64,000 bases of DNA, taken from positions 39,867 through 103,866 of the forward strand of contig MU619353.1 in the NCBI GenBank assembly GCA_025201805.1, read 5' to 3'. The first letter of the stretch is position 1. The number at the start of each line of letters is the position of its first letter. The stretch is from Parasitella parasitica NRRL 2501 (taxonomy: Eukaryota > Fungi > Mucoromycota). This document shows positions 17,073-58,390 of this stretch, one piece after another. The position numbers and the translations under genes are program-made. Under the pieces are notes generated by a model that saw only the letters and a program-made list of their open reading frames with translations, was not told the origin of the DNA and did not search any database.

Positions 17073-18902
17073 CTACTTTCGCCATGAAAACTTTGTGTTG
17101 CCGTCATAGCGAAGTGAAAACGCTTCAATGCTACGCAAGTCTATCGATAAATCGAAAATATCCGACTTGGTCGTAGTTTTTGGATCCCATTCTTCGACCA
17201 TTTCTATAAATGAATTGCATGCATGGTGATGATATCTAATATAAAGGTTCTTTTTTGCCGTTCGGAGTGAAATATTGTATGTCAAATGTCTTGTCTCTTG
17301 GTTATTGAATGTGGTTATACCCGGCAGAAGTTCTTCAGTCTGATCAATGATTTCGATGCATACTTCTCTTATATCAGTACCAGGCATATAGATCAACTTA
17401 CGATTAGGCATAGAGGCGCAATGTATATTGAATTGCAAGGACAATTTTTCCAGGCCAGAAAAGTTGCTGCAAATATCCTGGGCTGCAAATCCAGCAGAAA
17501 AGTCAAAGTTCTTCAAACACAATTCACGAACGCTGGGAATAGAAAATTGGCCCTGGATAGGGACATTGTACTGACCACCAACGATAGTCAGTTTTTTTAC
17601 AATCTTGAATGCTTGTAATAAAGGAATGATACAGCCAACATAGTGCGTACGAGCTAAATCGGTTTGGAAATCAATGTACAATGAGGTTGCGACGGCAGCA
17701 AACTTGTGTAGATAGCGATTAATTTGATGTTCTCTTGCAGGTGTTGGAAGAGCGCGTATTTGAACATGATGTTGCTTGGATTTTCTTGAAAATGAATAGG
17801 TTATCGCATCCCGTAAGTCACTATGTCCTTGTAAGCTGTTACTGTCTACCAAGAAGCTGACGTCTGTTGTCCAGTCAGCCGTCGAGCCAGGCTTTGGCTT
17901 TGACATCCAGTTGGAAATGCAGCTGAGATATACAAGGTCAATAGATTCAGCAATAGCTTCCTGATGCATATTGCCGCAGCGAGAAATAATCTTGGCTTCC
18001 TTCAAACTACATAAAAGTTTGATTGTTGATGATAAAGCTTCCATATTGCCTGCACCAGTCAGTAATCTTGAGGTTGCGTTGTTGATATTGATAGTCAAGG
18101 ATTCTAGACAAGGAACATGGTGTAGGAATCTGTTCAAATCACTGAAGAAGAAAGCATAGTCGGTGGGAATGGTGATGGTAAGCGACTTCAAAGTGTGGTA
18201 TTTTGGCATTTTGACGGGATCCTCAGTTTGTAAGTCTTTTAATGTCAACAGTTCTAGCGACAGATGTTTAAGACCAGTATACAAACTAAAGACTGACATG
18301 ATACTGTTCATTGATGTGATCCTTTCCTTCAAAATGAGAGTCTCAAGGTGAGGAAGCTCTATTGGATATCTAATGTCTCCAGTCATATGGTTCAGAAAGG
18401 ATGCCGTACGAAATTCGGTTATTGATTGATGGTACGTCTTGATGCACTCTCGGTAGAAATGGGTGGCTTCTGTGGTGTTTGCTGGTATTGTTGCAAGTTT
18501 CTTGAATTCAAGTACATGGCGTAAAATGAAAAGAGCTTTCAAAACAACAGCTGCCGTGTCGCTATTGCTTGAAATGTGCTCTAAATTCGCACAACGTCTA
18601 AGAATTCGATACATGGATTTTTGTTTGGCGACAATGTCGGCAGCGTTGATCATCCGAGGCAGATCAAAGTGAATGTGCTGTACCAAGTGACCAAACAAGT
18701 TTAGGGCCTCCAACAGGAAATTCAAGTCTGTATGTTCTCTGATTGTGATTTTGTTGTAAAACCGTATAGTTGCTGGATAGTACCAAGCTTTGCAAACGCG
18801 CTTGCATTCTTTCATGTCGTCTGTCTCCAATAAAATACATATGCCGGTCAATATTTCTGCTGGGAGTTTTTGATTATTATAAAAAGTTCTCGTCGTGTTC
18901 AT
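17073..18902 (-). CDS. F-box protein with a degenerate LRR/RNI-like C-terminus, intronless
   Basis: N-terminal LPAEILTGICILL...CKRVCKAWY F-box signature; repeated LxxLxL units (LETLIL, LKHLSL, LKSLTI, LESLTI, LEKLSL); 609-aa ORF. Confidence 0.85.
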   Translation of the reverse strand: MNTTRTFYNNQKLPAEILTGICILLETDDMKECKRVCKAWYYPATIRFYNKITIREHTDLNFLLEALNLFGHLVQHIHFDLPRMINAADIVAKQKSMYRILRRCANLEHISSNSDTAAVVLKALFILRHVLEFKKLATIPANTTEATHFYRECIKTYHQSITEFRTASFLNHMTGDIRYPIELPHLETLILKERITSMNSIMSVFSLYTGLKHLSLELLTLKDLQTEDPVKMPKYHTLKSLTITIPTDYAFFFSDLNRFLHHVPCLESLTININNATSRLLTGAGNMEALSSTIKLLCSLKEAKIISRCGNMHQEAIAESIDLVYLSCISNWMSKPKPGSTADWTTDVSFLVDSNSLQGHSDLRDAITYSFSRKSKQHHVQIRALPTPAREHQINRYLHKFAAVATSLYIDFQTDLARTHYVGCIIPLLQAFKIVKKLTIVGGQYNVPIQGQFSIPSVRELCLKNFDFSAGFAAQDICSNFSGLEKLSLQFNIHCASMPNRKLIYMPGTDIREVCIEIIDQTEELLPGITTFNNQETRHLTYNISLRTAKKNLYIRYHHHACNSFIEMVEEWDPKTTTKSDIFDLSIDLRSIEAFSLRYDGNTKFSWRK

Positions 18903-19898
18903 TGCTTCCTTTTATCTGTAGTCAGGTACGTTCATATTGAAATTTAGACGGCCTTATATACATATTTACAGGATTGTCTCATGACAATGAGCAAAAGACC
19001 GATGATAAAGACCATGTCGTTTCCAATTGGCAACAACTATCATACCATCTTTTGAAATGAAGCAATAGCAGGCAATATATTTTATATAAATGTTATATTG
19101 TGTATAGCGTTCAATTTGGTAGATATTTTTATGAATATTTATAGTATATGAACGAGGATGTTAAGTTAAGAGGGCACCTGTATAAATTTCCTTGGGGATT
19201 TACGTATTACCGTATAAAACTAAATACGGTTGGCCCTAAGGACATTCAAAAAAGGAAGACATGTCATGGGAATAGAGCCATTGTTGTATGACACTGCTTT
19301 TCGACACATGGCGTATATACTGATTTTGCAATGCCTATTGTTTCAAATGCTCTGGATCACCAATTTGTAGACTTGTATAAGCTATTGTCACTCTATTCCG
19401 CTATGCAAGTAGATAAATACAATAAATCTCTAGAGCACGTGAATTAGTATCATACAGGAGCGCTCAATGTATTGAAACTCTGATCATGAGACATCCTTTA
19501 TAAGGCCACGCCAAATATCGTTTGAATTCGTCATTATGGTACAACACACATTTAATGGATCGACATTGAACATGTGCGCAGTGTACCCTAGTAATTAATC
19601 TGGTTTCTGTCGATAAAGCTATTGATGAAAAGCAGAGATACATACACTACGGCATCATGTTCAAAGAACAGTGTTTACAAATCAGCGTATGTTGTAGTTA
19701 ATAGTTGTAGCTTTTATCACAGAGCTAATTTTGAATGAGCGTAATTTTTTTTATTATTATTAAGGAATGAATAAAAATGAAAGGCATGAGTCACTGAAGG
19801 TCATAAACGAGAGTTCAAAGTTCATATAAAAAGAGGACATAATATTTTGTGTGCATAGTGGGAGCGATTATCCCAACTTGATTAATTCATAGAGTTGC

Positions 19899-21599
19899 TC
19901 AAAAAGCTAAAAAATAGACAGCAGTAATAGCTGCTATCATCAAATTTATGATGATCGCAGCGCTCATTGATGCAAATGACGAGAGACCGCCATCGTTAGC
20001 TAATGCATTCATAACGTCCACATCCAAAAATCCAAAGCCTGAAAATGACGCATTCATGGTAGCAGCTACGTTATAGCCGGTAGTGTTAACAGGAAAGGTG
20101 ATTAACAAGAGCTTTTTCTCTCGTGCAGAAGGTGCAATTGTTCCCCAAATCCAGTCGTCTGGACTGTAAGCGCCATCGACAGCGACTACTGTAGCGTTGA
20201 CGCCAATTGAAACGGAAAGAGACACATCCGTAATGTTGACAGAAGACTGATACTCTGAGCGGGCTTCCGTGTAATCACCGATAGATGCGCCGTAAGTAGT
20301 GTTGGTTTTGACTCGGTTCGCGACATCGAGGCTAGTTGTTGCGTTAACGTCAAAGCCGATTGGGGTCTCAGTTATGGCTGTTACTAGCTGAGTAACACCG
20401 AGACGGGCATTGGGGTGTGCGCGTGCTACGGCTGTAGGAAATCCCTCGACACTGAAATCATACTGGAGAGAATTTGGTTGCATAGGGATGGGTGCCGAGT
20501 TGTTCAGCTGCGAATTGCTGGTTCGATAGGTAATGCGAACCTTAAAGTTGGGATTATCAATGATGTTGTTATAGGCCACATTTGCACTGGTGCTAGTGTG
20601 AAGATAGGATTGAGTAGTGTTGCTAGGAATAGTGATATTCTGGACCTGGAATTGCTCCCACTGCAAATTCTTCAAGGAGGTCAAGGAATAAACAGACTCA
20701 AACTCGTCATATAAACCGTTTTGATTTGCATCATCAAATTCAATGATATGAGAGAATTGCAAGCGATAGACGAAATCAGCATTGCGAGCATTCAAGTCTG
20801 AAGAAGAAAAGAAAGCATGGTCAGCCATGGGATACTGATTGTTAGTGCTGATGTTGAAGGAATAGTGATAATTATCTCCGTCTCCAGAGTTCACTGTGCC
20901 ATTGATGACAACATTGCTACTGTAACTACCCTGCACAGTAAGCTGGGGTGCATAATAATAGCCATTATCTTGCTGGTAGCGATGATAAGTTGAGTCATAT
21001 CCATAATGCCAGTACGGTGGCAATATCCAAAAATAGGTTACGGATGGATTATAGTGTCCATTATAGCCATATCGTGAGCTTGAGCTATATCTGCCGGAAT
21101 AAGCAGGAGCATAATTTTGGTAATTACCTAAATAGAGACGGTCTGGTTAGATGGCACAGAACAAATGTACTCTATGTTGCTATGAATGAAATATACCTCT
21201 TGTGCTAGCATAATAGGTTGGAGGTGGTATACCAAAGCCTCCATTTCCGCCTTTTGATGATACACTTTTGGGGGTTGATCCAGAGCCTTTATAGTAAGTG
21301 TCAATGGGTGTGCTGAATTCGTTGCTTTTGTTAATCTACATACCTGCTACCATTCCGCCTTTTTTTCCACCAGACGACCCTCTTACAGAGGACCCTTTTC
21401 CACCGGATAAACTTTTTCCAGATGAACCACGTGTACTTCCTCCTCTGCCTCCTCCAACTCCTTTAGCAACAACAACTACACATAGAATACTCAGTAGATG
21501 CACAATATAATCATTTTGTGGTTTAAATATCATGTAAGAAAAAAACTTACAAAGAGTGCAGTACGTTAACACGATGGATGTTGACAGAATAAATTTCAT
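19899..21599 (-). CDS. Secreted, probably GPI-anchored or C-terminally anchored surface protein of unknown function, four exons
   Basis: ATG at 21599 with a hydrophobic leader (MKFILSTSIVLTYCTL/VVVAKG). G/S/K/R-rich then Y/G/P-rich exons splice in frame into ORF 19899-21023. Many N-x-S/T sites; hydrophobic C-terminus AAIIINLMIAAITAVYFLAF*. Confidence 0.8.
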
Positions 21600-47114: not shown

Positions 47115-48166
47115 ATGGTGGTTTCCCTTCTCAACAGTATAAGCGCTGAAAAGCCTTTCGGCATTTATCTATTTGACTATTTTGACAAGGCATATTCATC
47201 CGTTGTCGGTAAATCAGCCACAGAATTTGCATTTAGGCAAGGCTATACCCCTCTGTCCACTTTATCCGAAGGTAAGTTTTTGAGTAAAATACTGATACAT
47301 GCTGAATGCCGACTCAATTAAATCAGTATGTGTTGGATGTGTCGCATACATTGCGATCATCTTTGGTGGACGGTGCTTGATGGAAAATTACAAGCCAGTG
47401 TCTTGCAAACCCTTATTCCAGCTTCATAATGTGCTTTTGACAGTTGTGTCAGGTGCGTTGTGGGCACTCTTGTTTGAACAACTCTTTCCTCAGTTGTACC
47501 GCAAAGGAATCTATTTTACCATTTGTTCTGAAAATGCTTGGACACCACAATTGGAGTTGATCTATTATTTGAACTATCTGGTAAAATGGTGGGAGCTGGC
47601 AGATACTGGATTCTTGGTAATTAAAAAAAAGAAGCTTGGTGAGAATCTCTTTAATTGCAGTGGTTTTGACCTTCTCTGATTTACATACTCGATGTAGAAT
47701 TTTTGCACTACTTCCATCACAGTATGACAATGGCATTGTGTTATACACAATTGGTTGGTAAAACTACCGTGGTAAGTCATCAGTAGAATTAAGGGAGTGT
47801 TGTGTATTAGTCGAATAACCGCTGCTATAGTCTTGGGTGCCTATCATTTTGAATCTAACAGTGCATGTATTGATGTATTACTACTACTTCCGTACTGCTA
47901 CTGGGGCCAAGATTTGGTGGAAGCGCTACCTTACTACATTGCAAATCATCCAATTTGTCATTGATCTGGTTGTGATTTACACTGTAACCTTTAGCTATTT
48001 TGCATTCACTTATATGGATAGCCTACCCAATTTCGGCACCTGTGCAGGAACGGAAAGTGCCGCTGCATTTGGCTGTGCCATCCTGACGTCTTACTTATTC
48101 CTGTTCATCAATTTTTATAGAATCACTTATAAACAAAAGCAACAACACAAGCAAAAAGCAACATAA
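47115..48166 (+). CDS. Fatty-acid elongase (ELO/GNS1/SUR4 family), four exons
   Basis: YYLNYLVKWWELADT, histidine box FLHYFHH, NLTVHVLMYYYY, TTLQIIQF, SYLFLFINFY. Confidence 0.95.
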
Positions 48167-48168
48167 TC

Positions 48169-48927
48169 TCAATAAATTTTATTCTTCATTATAAAATCGA
48201 CGATGGATGGGTCAAGGGTTTTGTGGATTAGATCTGTGTTGTTTTGATGGATAGCTTCGCGAGCCATTGTGCTAGAAAATTGACTTGTGATGGGGTCCAA
48301 CTGAATGCGTGTAATGAGTGCCCTGTCAAAGGTTTTGTATGTATTAGCCCAGAAGTCCACATCCTCTTTGCCTCTATCGGCACAAATTAAATGGCATGAC
48401 TCAAAGAAAGGAGCCAGCGCCTCTTTTACAGACATGCCACTATAGTATTTGGGATCCAAGAGTCTGATCATAGTATCAAAGCCAACAATAAAGTATAGTT
48501 TTAATCGGTTAAAATAGCCGTTGTAACTCTCAGCAAACCAGGAATGTATGTATTTAGCCTTGTCCAAGAATCTTCCATGAGGTGTAAATCCAACCGCTGT
48601 GTCTGGGAAATGTTGCACCATGATTTCCATCATTTGAGCACGCTGTAGAACACTAGCTCCTGTCAATGACTTGTCAACGTTATTGGTGGAGAATAATAAT
48701 AAAGACCCCTTGAAAAAATTAGAAGGGTAGGATTCTAGCGAAGTCTGTAGTAGTTTAGCGTGTGCTTTTGTGGGCGGATTAAAGGAAGAATCCAAGACTA
48801 GTATACGGCATATCTGGTTCTCTGAAGTCTCAACGGGCCACTGGTTGGAAGGCGTAAATGTCATATAAAAATCTTTGGTGTCATTCTCTCTCAAGATGGT
48901 TTGTATAATCTCTATGCGTTCAGTCAT
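48169..48927 (-). CDS. POF1: Pof1-like nucleotidyltransferase (NMN adenylyltransferase type), intronless
   Basis: RILVLDSSFNPPTKAH (HxGH-like site), LLFSTNNVDK, FIVGFDTMIRLLDPKYY, SSTMARE. Confidence 0.85.
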   Translation of the reverse strand: MTERIEIIQTILRENDTKDFYMTFTPSNQWPVETSENQICRILVLDSSFNPPTKAHAKLLQTSLESYPSNFFKGSLLLFSTNNVDKSLTGASVLQRAQMMEIMVQHFPDTAVGFTPHGRFLDKAKYIHSWFAESYNGYFNRLKLYFIVGFDTMIRLLDPKYYSGMSVKEALAPFFESCHLICADRGKEDVDFWANTYKTFDRALITRIQLDPITSQFSSTMAREAIHQNNTDLIHKTLDPSIVDFIMKNKIY

Positions 48928-49128: not shown

Positions 49129-52100
49129 TTATCGCATATCACGTAAATGGACATCCTGGGTTGCTTGTAAGTGGACTTGAGAATTAGCATCGCTGCTGAC
49201 ACTTCCGCGGCTTTGTCTTTCACTAAACATGTGAGAAAAGCCGTTTTGATCTTCTTTCTGTTGCTGGTAGGGGCTCAACTTCTCAGAAGAAGAGAAAAAG
49301 GGATTAGCTCCTGTTTGAGTGCCCGGTGTGGCAATGCCATATTGTTGCTGATGTTGCTGTTGTTGTTGTTGCTGCAGGCCGTTCTTAGTTTGTGTTCCAG
49401 CAGCGGCATTGTCCAAGGAGCGGAAGACTTCATCATCGACATAATAGGCCTTGAACAGCAACTCTAAAATTTGCATACGCTCTTCCACACGAGACACTCG
49501 TTGAGCCTCGGTTTCTTGGCCCAAGTTCTGGAACTCATTGACGCTGAAACGGTGATGAACAGGGTGGACCAATGGAATGCCAGAATCGGTAGTTTTGAAC
49601 TTCTGTTGCAAGCCTTGGAGCAAAGATTGTTTGCGGCTACCAGTGGACCAACGATGGACAACACCCCAAGGAGATCTGGGACGGTAGCCAAAGAGCCATG
49701 CTTGAGCAGCAATCAACAAGCCAAAGATACCACCAACGAAACCAAGGGCATTGACAAGAGTGTACATCTTGACTTCACGGTCAACCAAAGTGGCAAAGGT
49801 CTCAGGGAATACAGCCAAGACACCAAGGTCAATATGGCCACTGGTGTAGGTAGGGTTGGGTGCCTCAGAACGGAAGTTGGACTCAATCTCGGGGGTGCTG
49901 TTGGAAACAGGCAAGAAGCCGACATAGTTCCAGCCAACAGGTTGCAAATAGCGGTGATCAACAATATCGTAGCTGAGGGCGCTATAGGTAAAAGGCTCAA
50001 TTGTATAGACATTAGTAGCTTGCAAGTCATTTCGCTCGGTAGTTTGCCAATTGAGGACGTCGAATTCAGACAGGTAATTGGCCATGCCATCATCGTAGCC
50101 GTAGACTTTCACGTTGGGATCCATTTCCTTTGCAAAGACAGATACATGAACACGAGCATAAGTGGCTGTTTGATCTCCAAACATGGTGAACAGCAAACGA
50201 GAGCCGTTGTTAGCACCAGAAGTTGAGGTCAATTTGAAGCTGTCGGGGGCACGGAAGAGGAAGCAGTTTACAGCGCCCAAATTGTCAGAGAAGGTGGGTT
50301 GGAAGACTGACATGTTGAGTGGCTTGATGTAAGAAGTGCAAGAGTAGCCGTTATCGGTTTGGCATGACACGCCAGGAGGGCCGTAAACGGCGCTTTCGGT
50401 GGGATAGCCATCATAACAGAAACGAACATCAGGCACATCTACCTCGGCAGCAGCATACTCGATTCTTTGTGTTACATTAGGGCTATCGACAGCTTGGCGA
50501 ATAACAAAATACAAGAACATGGCAAAGATAAACAGGAAAAATACCTGCGCAGCGAGACGGGAGGTCTCAGCCCACACAGGCTCACCGGTACGAGGTTTCC
50601 AGATATCGTTATGGATACGGACAACTAACCAGCGAATGTAGGATTGGAACTTCCAGACCAGGAACAGGATAATTACGAGTAATACAACAGCTCCGACAGT
50701 AACGCCTGCAATGAGGCCCTTCGAGACAGAGCCATCACCGCTGGACGATGATCCGCTGAATGTTTGCAGCCAAGTGCTAGTGGTCAAATCAAATGTATTG
50801 ATATCGTTATAATAAATGTTGGACGAAGAACCTATAGTCAAGAAACAAGGAGGGGGGGATAAGCAAATAAGGGATGAAAAAGGGAGGCAAAATATGTTAA
50901 TACAATAATCTTGAATTTGGCATCGATGCTATAATTACCAAACGCAACTGTAAGGTGTTTACCACCGTCCAAAATACCACCAACAGCAAAGGAACGACGA
51001 GAGGGAGGGATGCCGCCGATGCTAGGAATAGTCCAGGACCAAGTGTTGGTGTCGAGAATGGCCATGGTGTTCAAATACTGTCTGGTTCTTTGGCCATCCG
51101 CGCTGTCGCCTGCATGCATCATAATGAAAGTTAGTGATGATTAGATTGCACATGTACATCCGTACATACCTCCAAAAATGACAATCTTGTCATCAGAAGC
51201 TGTTAAAATAAAAGGGCATTATATGATCAGTACGCTGCTATATACAATGTTCAACAGTGCCAAAATGTACTTACTAACGACGGCTGTAAGGTCAGATGCA
51301 GTAGATGGGAAGCGAGAGGAAGTAGTAGAGAGTTTTCGCTCAACCCAGCCTTTGTTTGCTGGATCATAAACCCAAGCAGACTGGAGACTAGCGAGTGTAG
51401 AAGTGCCATTTAGCACAACACCGCCAATAACAACAAGCTGGCCGTTACTATAATTATTGGATGTAGCACAAAATAAATAACTTGAAATAATAATGTTCTT
51501 CCTTGTTATAGTTACCTTAAAATAGACGTAGTATGGCCGTATCTACCAAAAGGTGCAGACATTAGTGCCGTAGACTTGAAATTGGCGTCCAAGACATGAA
51601 AATCACTAAACACTTGGTTTGCACCCGAGATGGCGCCTCCCAAGACGTAGGTAAGTTGGTTTTTGCTGTCGTAGGTAGCAGTAAAGAACTCTCTGTTGTA
51701 AATGAACTCGGCAGGTGGAGGCGAGGAGACGTTGGCATTATTTCCAGCAAATGCGGTCCATGTTTGAGAAGCAAAGTTGTAGGTATAAATTTGAAGAGGC
51801 AATCCTCTGCCGTTGGTGACGTTAGACATGCCACCCATCAAAACCATGTTCTGGCCGTCAGCAGTAACGTAGGATTGACTGTATATGGTGCCATTAGGTG
51901 CGTTTGTTTGAGGGACAACCTCCCAATTATAACTGGTGGATGTCTGTGTCAATTTGTAAAGGTCGTTTGTATATCGTACAGTTGCATTTTCGCCACCAAA
52001 AAGATACAATGAGTCATTCTTTTGAGCAGATGCCATGCCGCCCTTGAACGGAAGCGTGTTCATGAAGCTAGGCACATAAAAGAAGGCTTGTGTTGTGCCA

Positions 52101-52147
52101 ACATAGGCTAATAACGCTGTCGTTAAAAAAAGTATCGAACTTTTCAT
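49129..52147 (-). CDS. Signal peptide, Kelch beta-propeller, TM helix and DEG/ENaC-like two-TM module, five exons
   Basis: Signal peptide MKSSILFLTTALLAYVGTTQA. Kelch blades (LYLFGG, MVLMGG, TYVLGG, RYGHT..LVVIGG, IVIFGG, PSRRSF). Four GT-AG introns keep the frame into ORF 49129-50841, which has three hydrophobic helices. Confidence 0.88.
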
Positions 52148-53301: not shown

Positions 53302-53763
53302 TTAGTGGTCGTTTTTGTGTCCAGAAATCTTGTTGGCCAGCTTTTCCAACATGTTTTCCACCTTATCAGCCAAAGTGCCATCTCCAGTATTGTTGTTGAC
53401 GTGTTGATTATTATTATCATTATGACCCGAATTTAAACCAATTGAGTTGTCGTTGCTGCTATGAGCTGGTTGTTGAGACTGACCATAGCCTTGTTGAGGT
53501 TGACCATAAGTTTGGGATTGCTCATTATTTTGGGATTGGCCATAATCTTGGGATTGGCCATAATCTTGGGATTGGCCATAATCCTGGCCTTGGCTATAAC
53601 CTTGAGGCTGCGTTTGACCACCAGCCAGAGCTTGATCAAAGGATTGGCCTCCAGACAACTGGCCTTGGCCGGTAAATTGACCTTGTTGGTCTTGTTGGCC
53701 TTGTTGACCATCGAGCTGGCCACCAAGGTCACCACTGACTCTACTGCGAGTATTGTAAGGCAT
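53302..53763 (-). CDS. Small hydrophilic Q/G/S/Y/N-rich low-complexity protein
   Basis: 153-aa intronless ORF with SQDYGQ repeats and a short amphipathic C-terminus (TLADKVENMLEKLANKISG). A TATA-like tataaa lies about 80 nt upstream on the minus strand. Confidence 0.75.
   Translation of the reverse strand: MPYNTRSRVSGDLGGQLDGQQGQQDQQGQFTGQGQLSGGQSFDQALAGGQTQPQGYSQGQDYGQSQDYGQSQDYGQSQNNEQSQTYGQPQQGYGQSQQPAHSSNDNSIGLNSGHNDNNNQHVNNNTGDGTLADKVENMLEKLANKISGHKNDH
53529..53584 (-). repeat. 18-bp tandem repeat, about three copies, coding (QDYGQS)n
   Basis: ttgggattggccataatc repeated three times on the + strand, with degenerate flanking copies. Confidence 0.9.
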
Positions 53764-54117: not shown

Positions 54118-55076
54118 ATGTCTGAAAAATACAAGAGTTTAAAAGTCAAGGAACTGCAAGGTATTTAGTCTTATCCCTGAGTCACCATGACAACTAAGCA
54201 ACTTTGTATAGAGCTGTTGACCAAGCACGGCCTGTCCCATACAGGGAAAAAGGAAGAACTGATTGAACGTCTTGTAAAGCATGACAATGAACTTGCGTCT
54301 TTAGATGATGAGTTTGCAGACCTTGATGAATTTGATGAGTCCAGAGTTAATCTAGAGTAAGTATCATTTTTGCTTCAAGCTGAATACGACTTATTTATTT
54401 GTTTATCAGTGACATTTCAGACTCTGTTAAGCCTATTGAAGACTTGACTGAAATAGAAGAGATTGCAGATGATGATGAGGTACTGAGACCCAAAGCCGCC
54501 ACCAGCACCACTGCAGAAGCCAAAAAACCGGAAGATGCTTCTCCTGCTGAAGTTCCTGTTACTGCCGTAAAACCATCTAGTGCACCTATCGCTAAACCCG
54601 ACTCAAACTTCAAATACACTCCCATTACGTTCGATAAACCAGCATCTGCTGTCAAAACTACCACTACTGCTACTAAACCAGCCACAATTGCAAAGGCATC
54701 AGCAATCGCTGCATCTCCTAGCCAACCTATCTCTGCTGCAGTGGATGCCAAGGAAAAATCAATAGGTGATGCCGAAAAAGCGTTAGAGCGTGCAAAGAGA
54801 TTTGGGATCCAATTGAATGAAAAGGCCAAACAGGACATTCGTGCCCAAAGATTTGGCATTGCAAATAAGGCACCATCGTCACCAGCGAAGAAAACAAGTA
54901 TTGACCCTGAGACACTTAAAAAGCGTGCAGAGAGATTTGGTATCTCGACACCTGCAGCAGCTGTGGCATCTTCGAAGGGTAAGGTACCAGTGACATTCGA
55001 CGCTGCTGAACAAGAAAAGAAGAGGAAGAGAGCTGAAAGATTCAGCGCCTCGAACAAGAAGCAAAAGGCGGAGTAG
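54118..55076 (+). CDS. THO1: SAP-domain mRNA export factor Tho1/SARNP, three exons
   Basis: SAP domain YKSLKVKELQELLTKHGLSHTGKKEELIERL; four RAxRF(G) motifs (RAKRFG, RAQRFG, RAERFG, RAERF). Confidence 0.9.
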
Positions 55077-56932: not shown

Positions 56933-58390
56933 TTATTGATAAAAATCAGAATCTTTCACGGCATTTTCATCCTCTTTATAAATTTTGATAGTTTTATCAG
57001 CCTCGCCAGTGATAAGACGAGAGCCTGTTTTATCAAAGGCACTACAAAAGACGCCAGCTTCAGCATCTAATGAACCAGGCTGAACAGTGGTATCCATAGA
57101 TTGGAAATTATGACCTGATCTCCAATCATTGAAGCTTAGAGAACCATCATCACCACCAGAAAAGATGACACCGTCCTGATTGAGAGCCAGTGTGTTGATA
57201 ATTGCCTTTTTTCTGTCAAAGCTCTGCATAAAGGTACCCTCAGGACACTTCCAACCCTTGACAGAATCTGCACTACCGCTCACAAAGCCAAATTCTGTAG
57301 GATGCAGAGCAAGCGCACGAACACTCTTTTTATGGTGAGTCAAGACGCCCATTGTTTTACCAGCTGCCAAATCCCATAATCTGATTGTATTATCCATGGA
57401 ACCCGTAATGACCTGTGGATCTGCCTCTTGACATTTGACAGCAGAAACGGTACTTGTGTGGCCAGTTAACACATGGATAGCTTGTTTTGTTCTCATGTCC
57501 CAAACACGAGCTGTAGCGTCACGGCCAGAAGTGACGAGAACATCCAATGTAGGATGCAAACTAAGCGAATAAACACCTGAAAGATGGCCATGATAATGAC
57601 GAATGACTTTGTTCTGTTCTAAATCCCAACATTTTACCATTTTATCTTCGCCACAAGAGAACAGATAAGGGTGCCTTGACGATACTTCTAAACCACGCAC
57701 TGTAGCAATATGGCCTGTAAGCGATAACTTTAATGTTCCTGATGCCATATCCCAAATCTTGATTGTACGATCACCAGCACCAGTAGCAAACCACTTGTTT
57801 CCAGGCTCAACAGTGACAGCACGAACCCAACCCAAATGACCACTAATAACACGCATCAGCTTCCAAGGTGCATGCCAGACAGGTCGAATAGTCTTTGCTC
57901 TAGCACGACGAACAAGTGATCCGCTGCCTGCTAATGTATCCCCAAATATATCGTTTGCAAACTGATCTTTACTGCGAAGAGCAACCACACCATTTGCCGC
58001 TGCTGCTCCTCCTTCTGCTGCAGATTTTTCAGGTATAGAATCTATTAATTGAGACACGGATGTCTTTTCATCTGCATCATCTTGGTCGTTGGAGACTTCC
58101 TCCACTGTCGTTGATTTAGCTTTCATACGAGCTTTGGCAGCTTCCTTTTGCTGCTTGATCAAGGCTTCTGGGAGTGTACGAAGATCCTTGTATTCGTCGT
58201 AGATCTTGCTAGTTAATTTAACACGTTGGCTTTCTTGTTCGTCCATGGCTGCTTGGCCGTAGGCTGAAGAAAACAGAACTCTGGTTTTTTTGGCAGAACT
58301 GGATAGCATTTCTTCAAGTTGATCATTTAATTTTGGTGTTTCTATCTCGGACTCTTGTTCTGCGGGTGCTGGACGTTTTGCGGCTACCAT
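56933..58390 (-). CDS. PRP46: WD40 spliceosomal NTC protein Prp46/PLRG1, intronless ORF
   Basis: [61 protein letters not shown]. Confidence 0.97.

Follow-up and report, generated by a model that had tools for sequence, protein, structure and literature searches.

A Kelch-Fused Membrane Protein of Mucoromycota, a Probable Trimeric Ion Channel Subunit with the DEG/ENaC-PAC Fold

Introduction

DEG/ENaC channels are regarded as belonging to animals, apart from a few protist outliers. A gene of the mucoralean fungus Parasitella parasitica NRRL 2501 raises the question of whether fungi own a branch of this channel fold, and whether that branch has been turned into a receptor. The gene occupies positions 49129..52147 on the reverse strand of a 64,000-nucleotide stretch of genomic DNA (hereafter, the window), and a preliminary description, made from the DNA letters and their open reading frames, had read it as an extracellular Kelch propeller joined to a DEG/ENaC/ASIC-like channel module. 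When Elkhatib et al. (2023) queried Fungi with DEG/ENaC sequences, the candidates that they obtained came only from holozoans, one alveolate and one stramenopile (PMC10507113). Prole and Taylor (2012) applied an ASIC1 query to pathogenic fungi and name ASICs in a passage that apparently lists absent channel types (PMC3410928). In the literature that we searched, outside of which most subscription journals lie, the family considered here is not described in any paper found, no paper combines ENaC with Mucoromycota or brings together ENaC, Kelch, fungi and a trimeric channel, and neither Kelch nor ENaC comes up in a survey that treats the expanded families of early-diverging fungi. The protein described below belongs to an undescribed fungal branch of the DEG/ENaC-PAC fold; its core is folded like the acid-sensing and epithelial sodium channels of animals, a family that has not been reported from fungi.

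One Gene Encodes the Propeller and the Two-TM Module

The gene consists of five exons (52147-51516, 51447-51275, 51199-51170, 51109-50939 and 50831-49129). As had been proposed, it is interrupted by four canonical GT-AG introns (51515-51448, 51274-51200, 51169-51110 and 50938-50832, of 68, 75, 60 and 107 nt), and their removal yields a single stop-free ORF of 902 codons. The encoded protein matches the annotated P. parasitica protein P0001 over its full length with 95% identity and Mucor lusitanicus P0002 with 89% identity; the searches for homologues were carried out exon by exon, and the full-length fold was modelled on P0001. At all four exon junctions, the alignment to Logan contigs from relatives, which lack the introns, is free of gaps, and two such contigs of ~3 kb from two runs, one of them terminating in sequencing adapter, hold a relative's entire 909-aa ORF.

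An erroneous joining of two adjacent genes, one for the Kelch part and one for the two-TM module, is extremely improbable. Merged gene models are known in the clade (P0121), but exon 5 holds the last Kelch blade, TM0 and the complete two-TM module, and the architecture is common to more than 100 homologues. We therefore reject the two-gene artefact, since a single exon spans the region from the last blade to the module and since the intron-free contigs align at the junctions.

Downstream, at 48169-48927 on the reverse strand, lies a cytidylyltransferase-like gene. In Pilobolus (P0121), the annotation joins a similar domain to the channel gene, which suggests that the gene order is conserved and that the Pilobolus model is a merged one. 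The other neighbors are ordinary genes coding for a fatty-acid elongase (ELO; 47299-48166, forward strand), a small Gln/Gly-rich repeat protein with no Pfam match (53302-53763, reverse), a Tho1/MOS11-like protein (54399-55076, forward) and a WD40 protein (56933-58390, reverse).

A Putatively Exported Propeller and an Additional Membrane Helix

The N-terminal part of the protein follows the layout that had been anticipated. Residues 1-21 (52085..52147) form a putative signal peptide, recognized by eye from its basic start, hydrophobic core and small residues at positions -3 and -1. They are followed by a Kelch β-propeller (residues 22-358; 50764..52084) that is predicted to be extracellular, is matched by Pfam PF24681, above the Pfam cut-off, and PF24981, and has six blades of four strands each in the predicted structure of the orthologue P0001. 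In structural comparisons with VIA the propeller reaches Z-scores of 34.8 with KLHDC3 and 34.4 with LZTR1, and KLHDC10 falls within 34-35. The propeller fold, including the GG and W motifs of Kelch repeats, is thus held in common with the Kelch domains of KLHDC2/3/10, LZTR1 and plant specifier proteins (Z 32-35), whereas the fungal domain differs from them in being predicted to be extracellular and tethered to the membrane.

A Ser/Gly linker of variable sequence and low pLDDT leads from the propeller to TM0 (residues 374-395; 50653..50718; KD 3.09), an extra helix that was found in 111 of the 113 long homologues. The basic TM0-TM1 linker of 32 aa (50557..50652), predicted to be cytosolic, bears a conserved WxPRxGEPxW motif, and TM1 (residues 428-447; 50497..50556; KD 2.53) is a helix in both models. 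The positions of TM0, the linker and the start of TM1 are those given in the preliminary description, and its layout of a signal peptide and three TM helices is supported; the hydrophobic peaks of the window protein lie at residues 376-394, 428-446 and 693-716. Lys and Arg together account for 19.9% of the TM0-TM1 linker and 12.4% of the tail, versus 5-6% in the Kelch domain and the loop between TM1 and TM2, as expected if the propeller and the loop face outside. N-glycosylation sequons are no commoner than composition predicts, and their density did not discriminate between topologies.

Databases label such proteins as galactose oxidases. The active site of galactose oxidase needs the cysteine of a Tyr-Cys cofactor in the propeller. 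The first cysteine of the window protein is residue 474, beyond the propeller; the cofactor cannot form, and we therefore reject a galactose oxidase (AA5) assignment and regard the label as a mis-transfer.

The Two-TM Module Has the Fold of ASIC and PAC Channels

The ectodomain between TM1 and TM2 (residues 448-691; 49765..50496) is modelled as a β-domain of the ASIC/PAC type. An AlphaFold2 model of the module, based on an alignment of 136 rows, has a pLDDT of 93 and a pTM of 0.83, and it bears out the expectation of an ASIC-like β-sandwich ectodomain, here without a thumb. The best 50 Foldseek matches to this model in the PDB are all ASIC or PAC, with the best E-value being 1.6e-10. When the model was compared by VIA with 48,161 PDB representatives, ranks 1-11 were all occupied by DEG/ENaC or PAC proteins (Z 10.2-12.3), with identities of 19% for ASIC1 and 9% for PAC and with the next row at 7.9. 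Every solved full-length protein among these eleven is a trimeric ion channel. No channel was found by a single-sequence phmmer search of the PDB, so that profiles and structure were needed, and among viral structures the best E-value was 6e-3, with no relatives. On the strength of the model, the module almost certainly has the DEG/ENaC-PAC fold.

Within this fold, two solved families have to be considered. The module aligns with ASIC1 over 236-250 residues at Z 12.3-12.9 and, with the same two-TM arrangement and β-domain, resembles the DEG/ENaC/ASIC channels in general (PF00858; ASIC1a 6AVE, ENaC 6BQN, FaNaC, centipede BRTNaC1 and PDPNaC1), to which the fungal protein adds a signal peptide, a Kelch propeller, TM0 and a cytosolic trimer coil. 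The Z-scores with PAC (TMEM206/ASOR; PF15122) are level with those of ASIC (11-12.4), the best Foldseek E-values are to PAC, and PAC is the nearest solved family in searches of the ESM Atlas; the compact, thumbless ectodomain of similar size is a PAC-like feature too. By structure, then, ASIC and the PAC chloride channel are equally near to the model. The identity over the superposed residues, however, is only 5-10% for PAC and 17-20% for ASIC1 chains, there is no profile match to PAC, and the PAC clusters in the Atlas searches are chordate. The Atlas also holds unnamed Mucoromycota clusters of similar shape. Separately, its ciliate-rich PF27811 (Y80K_N) clusters resemble the module (TM 0.61, features 0.87), and these ciliate proteins are possibly another unrecognized branch of the fold.

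Sequence Motifs Place the Family on a Branch of Its Own

The likeness to ASIC can be followed in the sequence. The preliminary description had matched, by eye, four motifs of the loop and TM2 to DEG/ENaC/ASIC ones in the right order, and HMMER profile alignments to ASIC chains reproduce all four in that order, each below significance: the post-TM1 PxxxxC strand, the CyxF strand, the NG hairpin and the glycine pattern of pre-TM2 and TM2. The best PDB match of the family profile is ASIC2, with a non-significant E-value of 0.045. Once the Glomeromycota members were included in the profile, 13 of the 14 PDB sequences retrieved at E<10 were DEG/ENaC chains and none was PAC or Erv41. The sequence signal to DEG/ENaC is weak but specific. 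The Pfam ASC profile (PF00858), proposed earlier as a check, does match the window protein (E=0.0015), but the score of 18.1 bits is below the gathering cut-off of 23.6 and the match is confined to the pre-TM2 and TM2 region; at E<=0.1, ASC matches 50 of the 136 family members, with the best E-value being 4.4e-5.

The loop has 244 aa and exactly four cysteines (474, 492, 500 and 525), which is also the family average, and there is no Cys-rich thumb; both properties, as well as the position of TM2 (residues 692-717; 49687..49764), agree with what had been read by eye (about 245 aa, four Cys and TM2 at about 49770-49690). P469 and C474, aligned to the post-TM1 motif of ASIC, are conserved at 99-100%. 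C474 and C525 align with the cysteines that ASIC has on its post-TM1 and CYTFN strands, and their joint loss in Funneliformis is what would be expected of a disulfide pair. The four loop cysteines are conserved and likely paired as 474-525 and 492-500.

TM2, the most conserved helix and likely the pore-lining one, as indicated by the HMMER alignment, conservation and Pfam ASC, carries four glycines (G699, G702, G703 and G706) that match those of ASIC. Other features of the known channels are missing. The G/S-x-S selectivity belt is present in none of the 136 sequences, the consensus being A-[LIV]-Q, and A710-A-Q712 stands in the window protein where ASIC has G-A-S. The HG motif was found in one of the 136 sequences within the ~18 aligned residues ahead of TM1, and the 32-aa linker of the window protein does not contain it. 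The position of the ASIC gate aspartate, which by the HMMER alignment is F700 in the window protein and Asp433 in ASIC numbering, is mostly occupied by Phe or another hydrophobic residue across the family. The TM2 lysine of the PAC type is missing from the family (Lys or Arg occurs in TM2 in seven of the 136 sequences), and no member is matched by the TMEM206 profile PF15122. Since the GAS belt, the HG motif and the gate aspartate are missing, the ASC match lies below the cut-off and PAC is equally close, the family is a separate branch of the fold and not a member of DEG/ENaC. Thus, the earlier assignment to a DEG/ENaC/ASIC-like module, which had overlooked that the belt, the HG motif and the gate aspartate are absent, is retained for the fold and given up for family membership. 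With the ASIC belt and the PAC lysine both absent, the sequence gives no reading of selectivity; our guess would be a poorly selective pore.

A Conserved Cytosolic Coil Predicts a Trimer

Across six homologues, identity is 88-100% in TM2, 55-95% in TM1 and 47-95% in the Kelch domain. The strongest constraint falls on TM2, the segment that follows it and the cytosolic coil, and the propeller is among the least conserved parts. The segment after TM2 (49543..49686), also cytosolic, comprises an RPxSPWG motif, an amphipathic helix and a PLVHP motif. Further on, a predicted coiled coil (residues 779-810; 49408..49503) contains two tandem RhxxhE motifs, R780-E785 and R787-E792, and the protein ends in a variable, low-complexity Gln/Ser-rich tail (49132..49407) in which identity falls fastest. 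RhxxhE mostly specifies parallel three-stranded coils, and some dimers carry it too (PMC3653964). The motif was found in 221 of 238 tails, those of Kelch-less members included, versus 3.8% of shuffles, and R787 and E792 are conserved at 97%; as the tails are related, these counts represent one conserved motif rather than 221 independent events. Taken from the sequence, assembly of the protein as a trimer is very probable.

Kelch-Fused and Kelch-Less Members of the Family

Kelch-fused members are found across Mucorales and in Umbelopsis, and Rhizopus, Mucor and Lichtheimia all have family members. No relative was found in Dikarya in our searches, and none in viral contigs. The genome of P. parasitica has five Kelch-fused copies. 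The four besides the window gene (G000:C122 61280-64004, C96 53940-56732, C40 ~178650-181450 and C7 103695-106450) have modules that are 35-71% identical, and in three of them the post-TM1 strand is split by an intron that is absent from the window gene. Stand-alone two-TM members of ~420 aa are found in the Glomeromycota Paraglomus, Ambispora and Funneliformis. In a quick, unrooted tree of fungal sequences only, a branch with 99% support parts the stand-alone forms from the fused ones, and the window gene is placed in a slowly evolving group that includes Umbelopsis.

A sixth member in P. parasitica lacks the propeller. This gene (L024:2591-4623, corresponding to G000:C91 ~18090-20122, reverse strand) encodes 556 aa and has six phase-0 introns, one of them GC-AG; a divergent gene lies so near on the upstream side that a propeller would not fit in between. 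The protein has two TM helices, the same four loop cysteines and the trimer motif, and it is closest to the stand-alone type of Glomeromycota (E 4e-42). The preliminary description had supposed that the propeller might replace the Cys-rich thumb as a sensor. The existence of members that are both Kelch-less and thumbless speaks against this and implies that the propeller is an addition to an already thumbless module and is not a required replacement for the thumb; judging from these sequences, the thumbless module would work without it.

Some members depart from the common pattern. A clade formed by P0223, P0234, P0208, P0213 and P0216 consists of fast-evolving Mucor and Helicostylum paralogues, some of which lie in local arrays, and at least one paralogue in it has a weak or missing TM0. 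P0259 of Funneliformis geosporum (727 aa) contains two tandem modules, which may reflect a merged gene model or else a natural concatemer; the C474/C525 pair is missing from its first repeat and from P0279.

Possible Mechanism and Alternative Explanations

The explanation that we prefer, and consider reasonably probable, is that the protein is a subunit of a trimeric membrane complex with the DEG/ENaC-PAC fold, which is most likely an ion channel from a Mucoromycota family not described before. In such a channel, the signal peptide would export the propeller from the cytosol and TM0 would bring the chain back, so that TM1, the ectodomain and TM2 would be placed as in ASIC. Three subunits would join through their β-domains and the three-stranded cytosolic coil, and three TM2 helices would surround a central pore closed by a hydrophobic ring at F700. 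Three propellers would sit beside the thumbless ectodomains, and either binding of a peptide, a glycan or a surface to a propeller or pulling on TM0 may shift the lower β-domain and open the pore. Mixed trimers with the Kelch-less paralogue are conceivable. The full-length model of P0001 has a pTM of 0.74 over 791 residues, which is a global score and not a contact map; the value is above expectation for two freely moving halves and hints at docking of the propeller on the module, that is, at a defined placement of one against the other.

Whether the trimer conducts ions should not be taken for granted, mainly because Erv41/ERGIC proteins show this fold outside of the known channels. It is possible that the protein is a non-conducting trimeric receptor, or a sorting receptor like Erv41/Erv46, whose propeller binds a lumenal cargo or ligand and whose conserved cytosolic segments recruit coats or signalling partners. 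Erv41/Erv46 (ERGIC2/3; PF07970, PF13850) likewise have two TM helices around a related β-sandwich, and Erv41p is the next structural match in VIA (Z 7.9) after the eleven DEG/ENaC and PAC rows, with an ERGIC cluster of the Atlas at TM 0.55; in addition, the fungal TM2 lacks both charged and GAS filter residues, its gate position is filled by a bulky hydrophobic side chain, and the cytosolic linker and tail are conserved as strongly as TM2. Nevertheless, the channels score far above Erv41p, the identity is 19% with ASIC versus 4% with Erv41p, and the TM2 glycines are in the ASIC register. P. parasitica moreover has three ordinary ERGIC loci, and when profiles were compared, a two-sequence profile of C-terminal ERGIC pieces from the same genome gave a probability of only 5.6%. 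We find such a non-conducting receptor unlikely, and consider ion conduction, on the evidence of the structural models, to be likely. Membership in ERGIC itself is rejected, as PF07970 and PF13850 match neither the window protein nor other family members, the profile probability is low, and so is the identity. As a separate observation, the lumenal domains of Erv41/ERGIC (PDB 3ZLC and the ESM Atlas cluster) share the ASIC/PAC-like fold with our model; no statement linking the two was found in the literature searched.

If the protein is a channel, the role of the propeller is the less certain part of the proposal. The module could be gated by protons or membrane tension, with the propeller serving only to anchor, localize or cluster the channel at the cell wall or at contact sites. 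PAC, which is thumbless and level with ASIC in our comparisons, is a proton-gated channel of the same fold in which the TM2 lysine K319 acts as the anion filter (PMC7904269). The Kelch-less members of Glomeromycota and P. parasitica show that the module can stand alone, and the variable, low-pLDDT Ser/Gly linker before TM0 would suit a mere anchor. However, 111 of the 113 long homologues retain the fusion, which has multiplied into diverging paralogues with the propeller as their fastest-changing part, and the pTM of the complete model speaks against a free tether. Gating by the module itself is rather improbable in our estimate, somewhat less so than the non-conducting receptor; it shares the channel premise with the preferred explanation and differs from it in the gating step, so that the two estimates overlap. 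Given a channel, control of gating by the propeller, as suggested by the models, has a little under an even chance. The complete proposal, in which trimeric channels of the DEG/ENaC-PAC fold form a branch specific to Mucoromycota and the Kelch fusion of Mucorales is an ionotropic receptor whose covalently tethered propellers open the pore upon binding a ligand or surface outside the cell, is accordingly put forward only tentatively. We found no counterpart of such a tethered-propeller, receptor-gated design among proteins of this fold that have been solved or published.

Concluding Remarks

With members across Mucorales, in Umbelopsis and in arbuscular mycorrhizal fungi, the family partly closes the gap in the distribution of this fold, and the combination of a PAC-sized ectodomain with ASIC-like motifs offers a handle on a possible common ancestor of ASIC and PAC. 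The Kelch fusion represents a testable route from outside contact to ion flux in fungi. Rhizopus, Mucor and Lichtheimia cause mucormycosis. The family members of these pathogens, mislabelled as galactose oxidases, may therefore amount to a sensory system that is still unexplored and could serve as a drug target.
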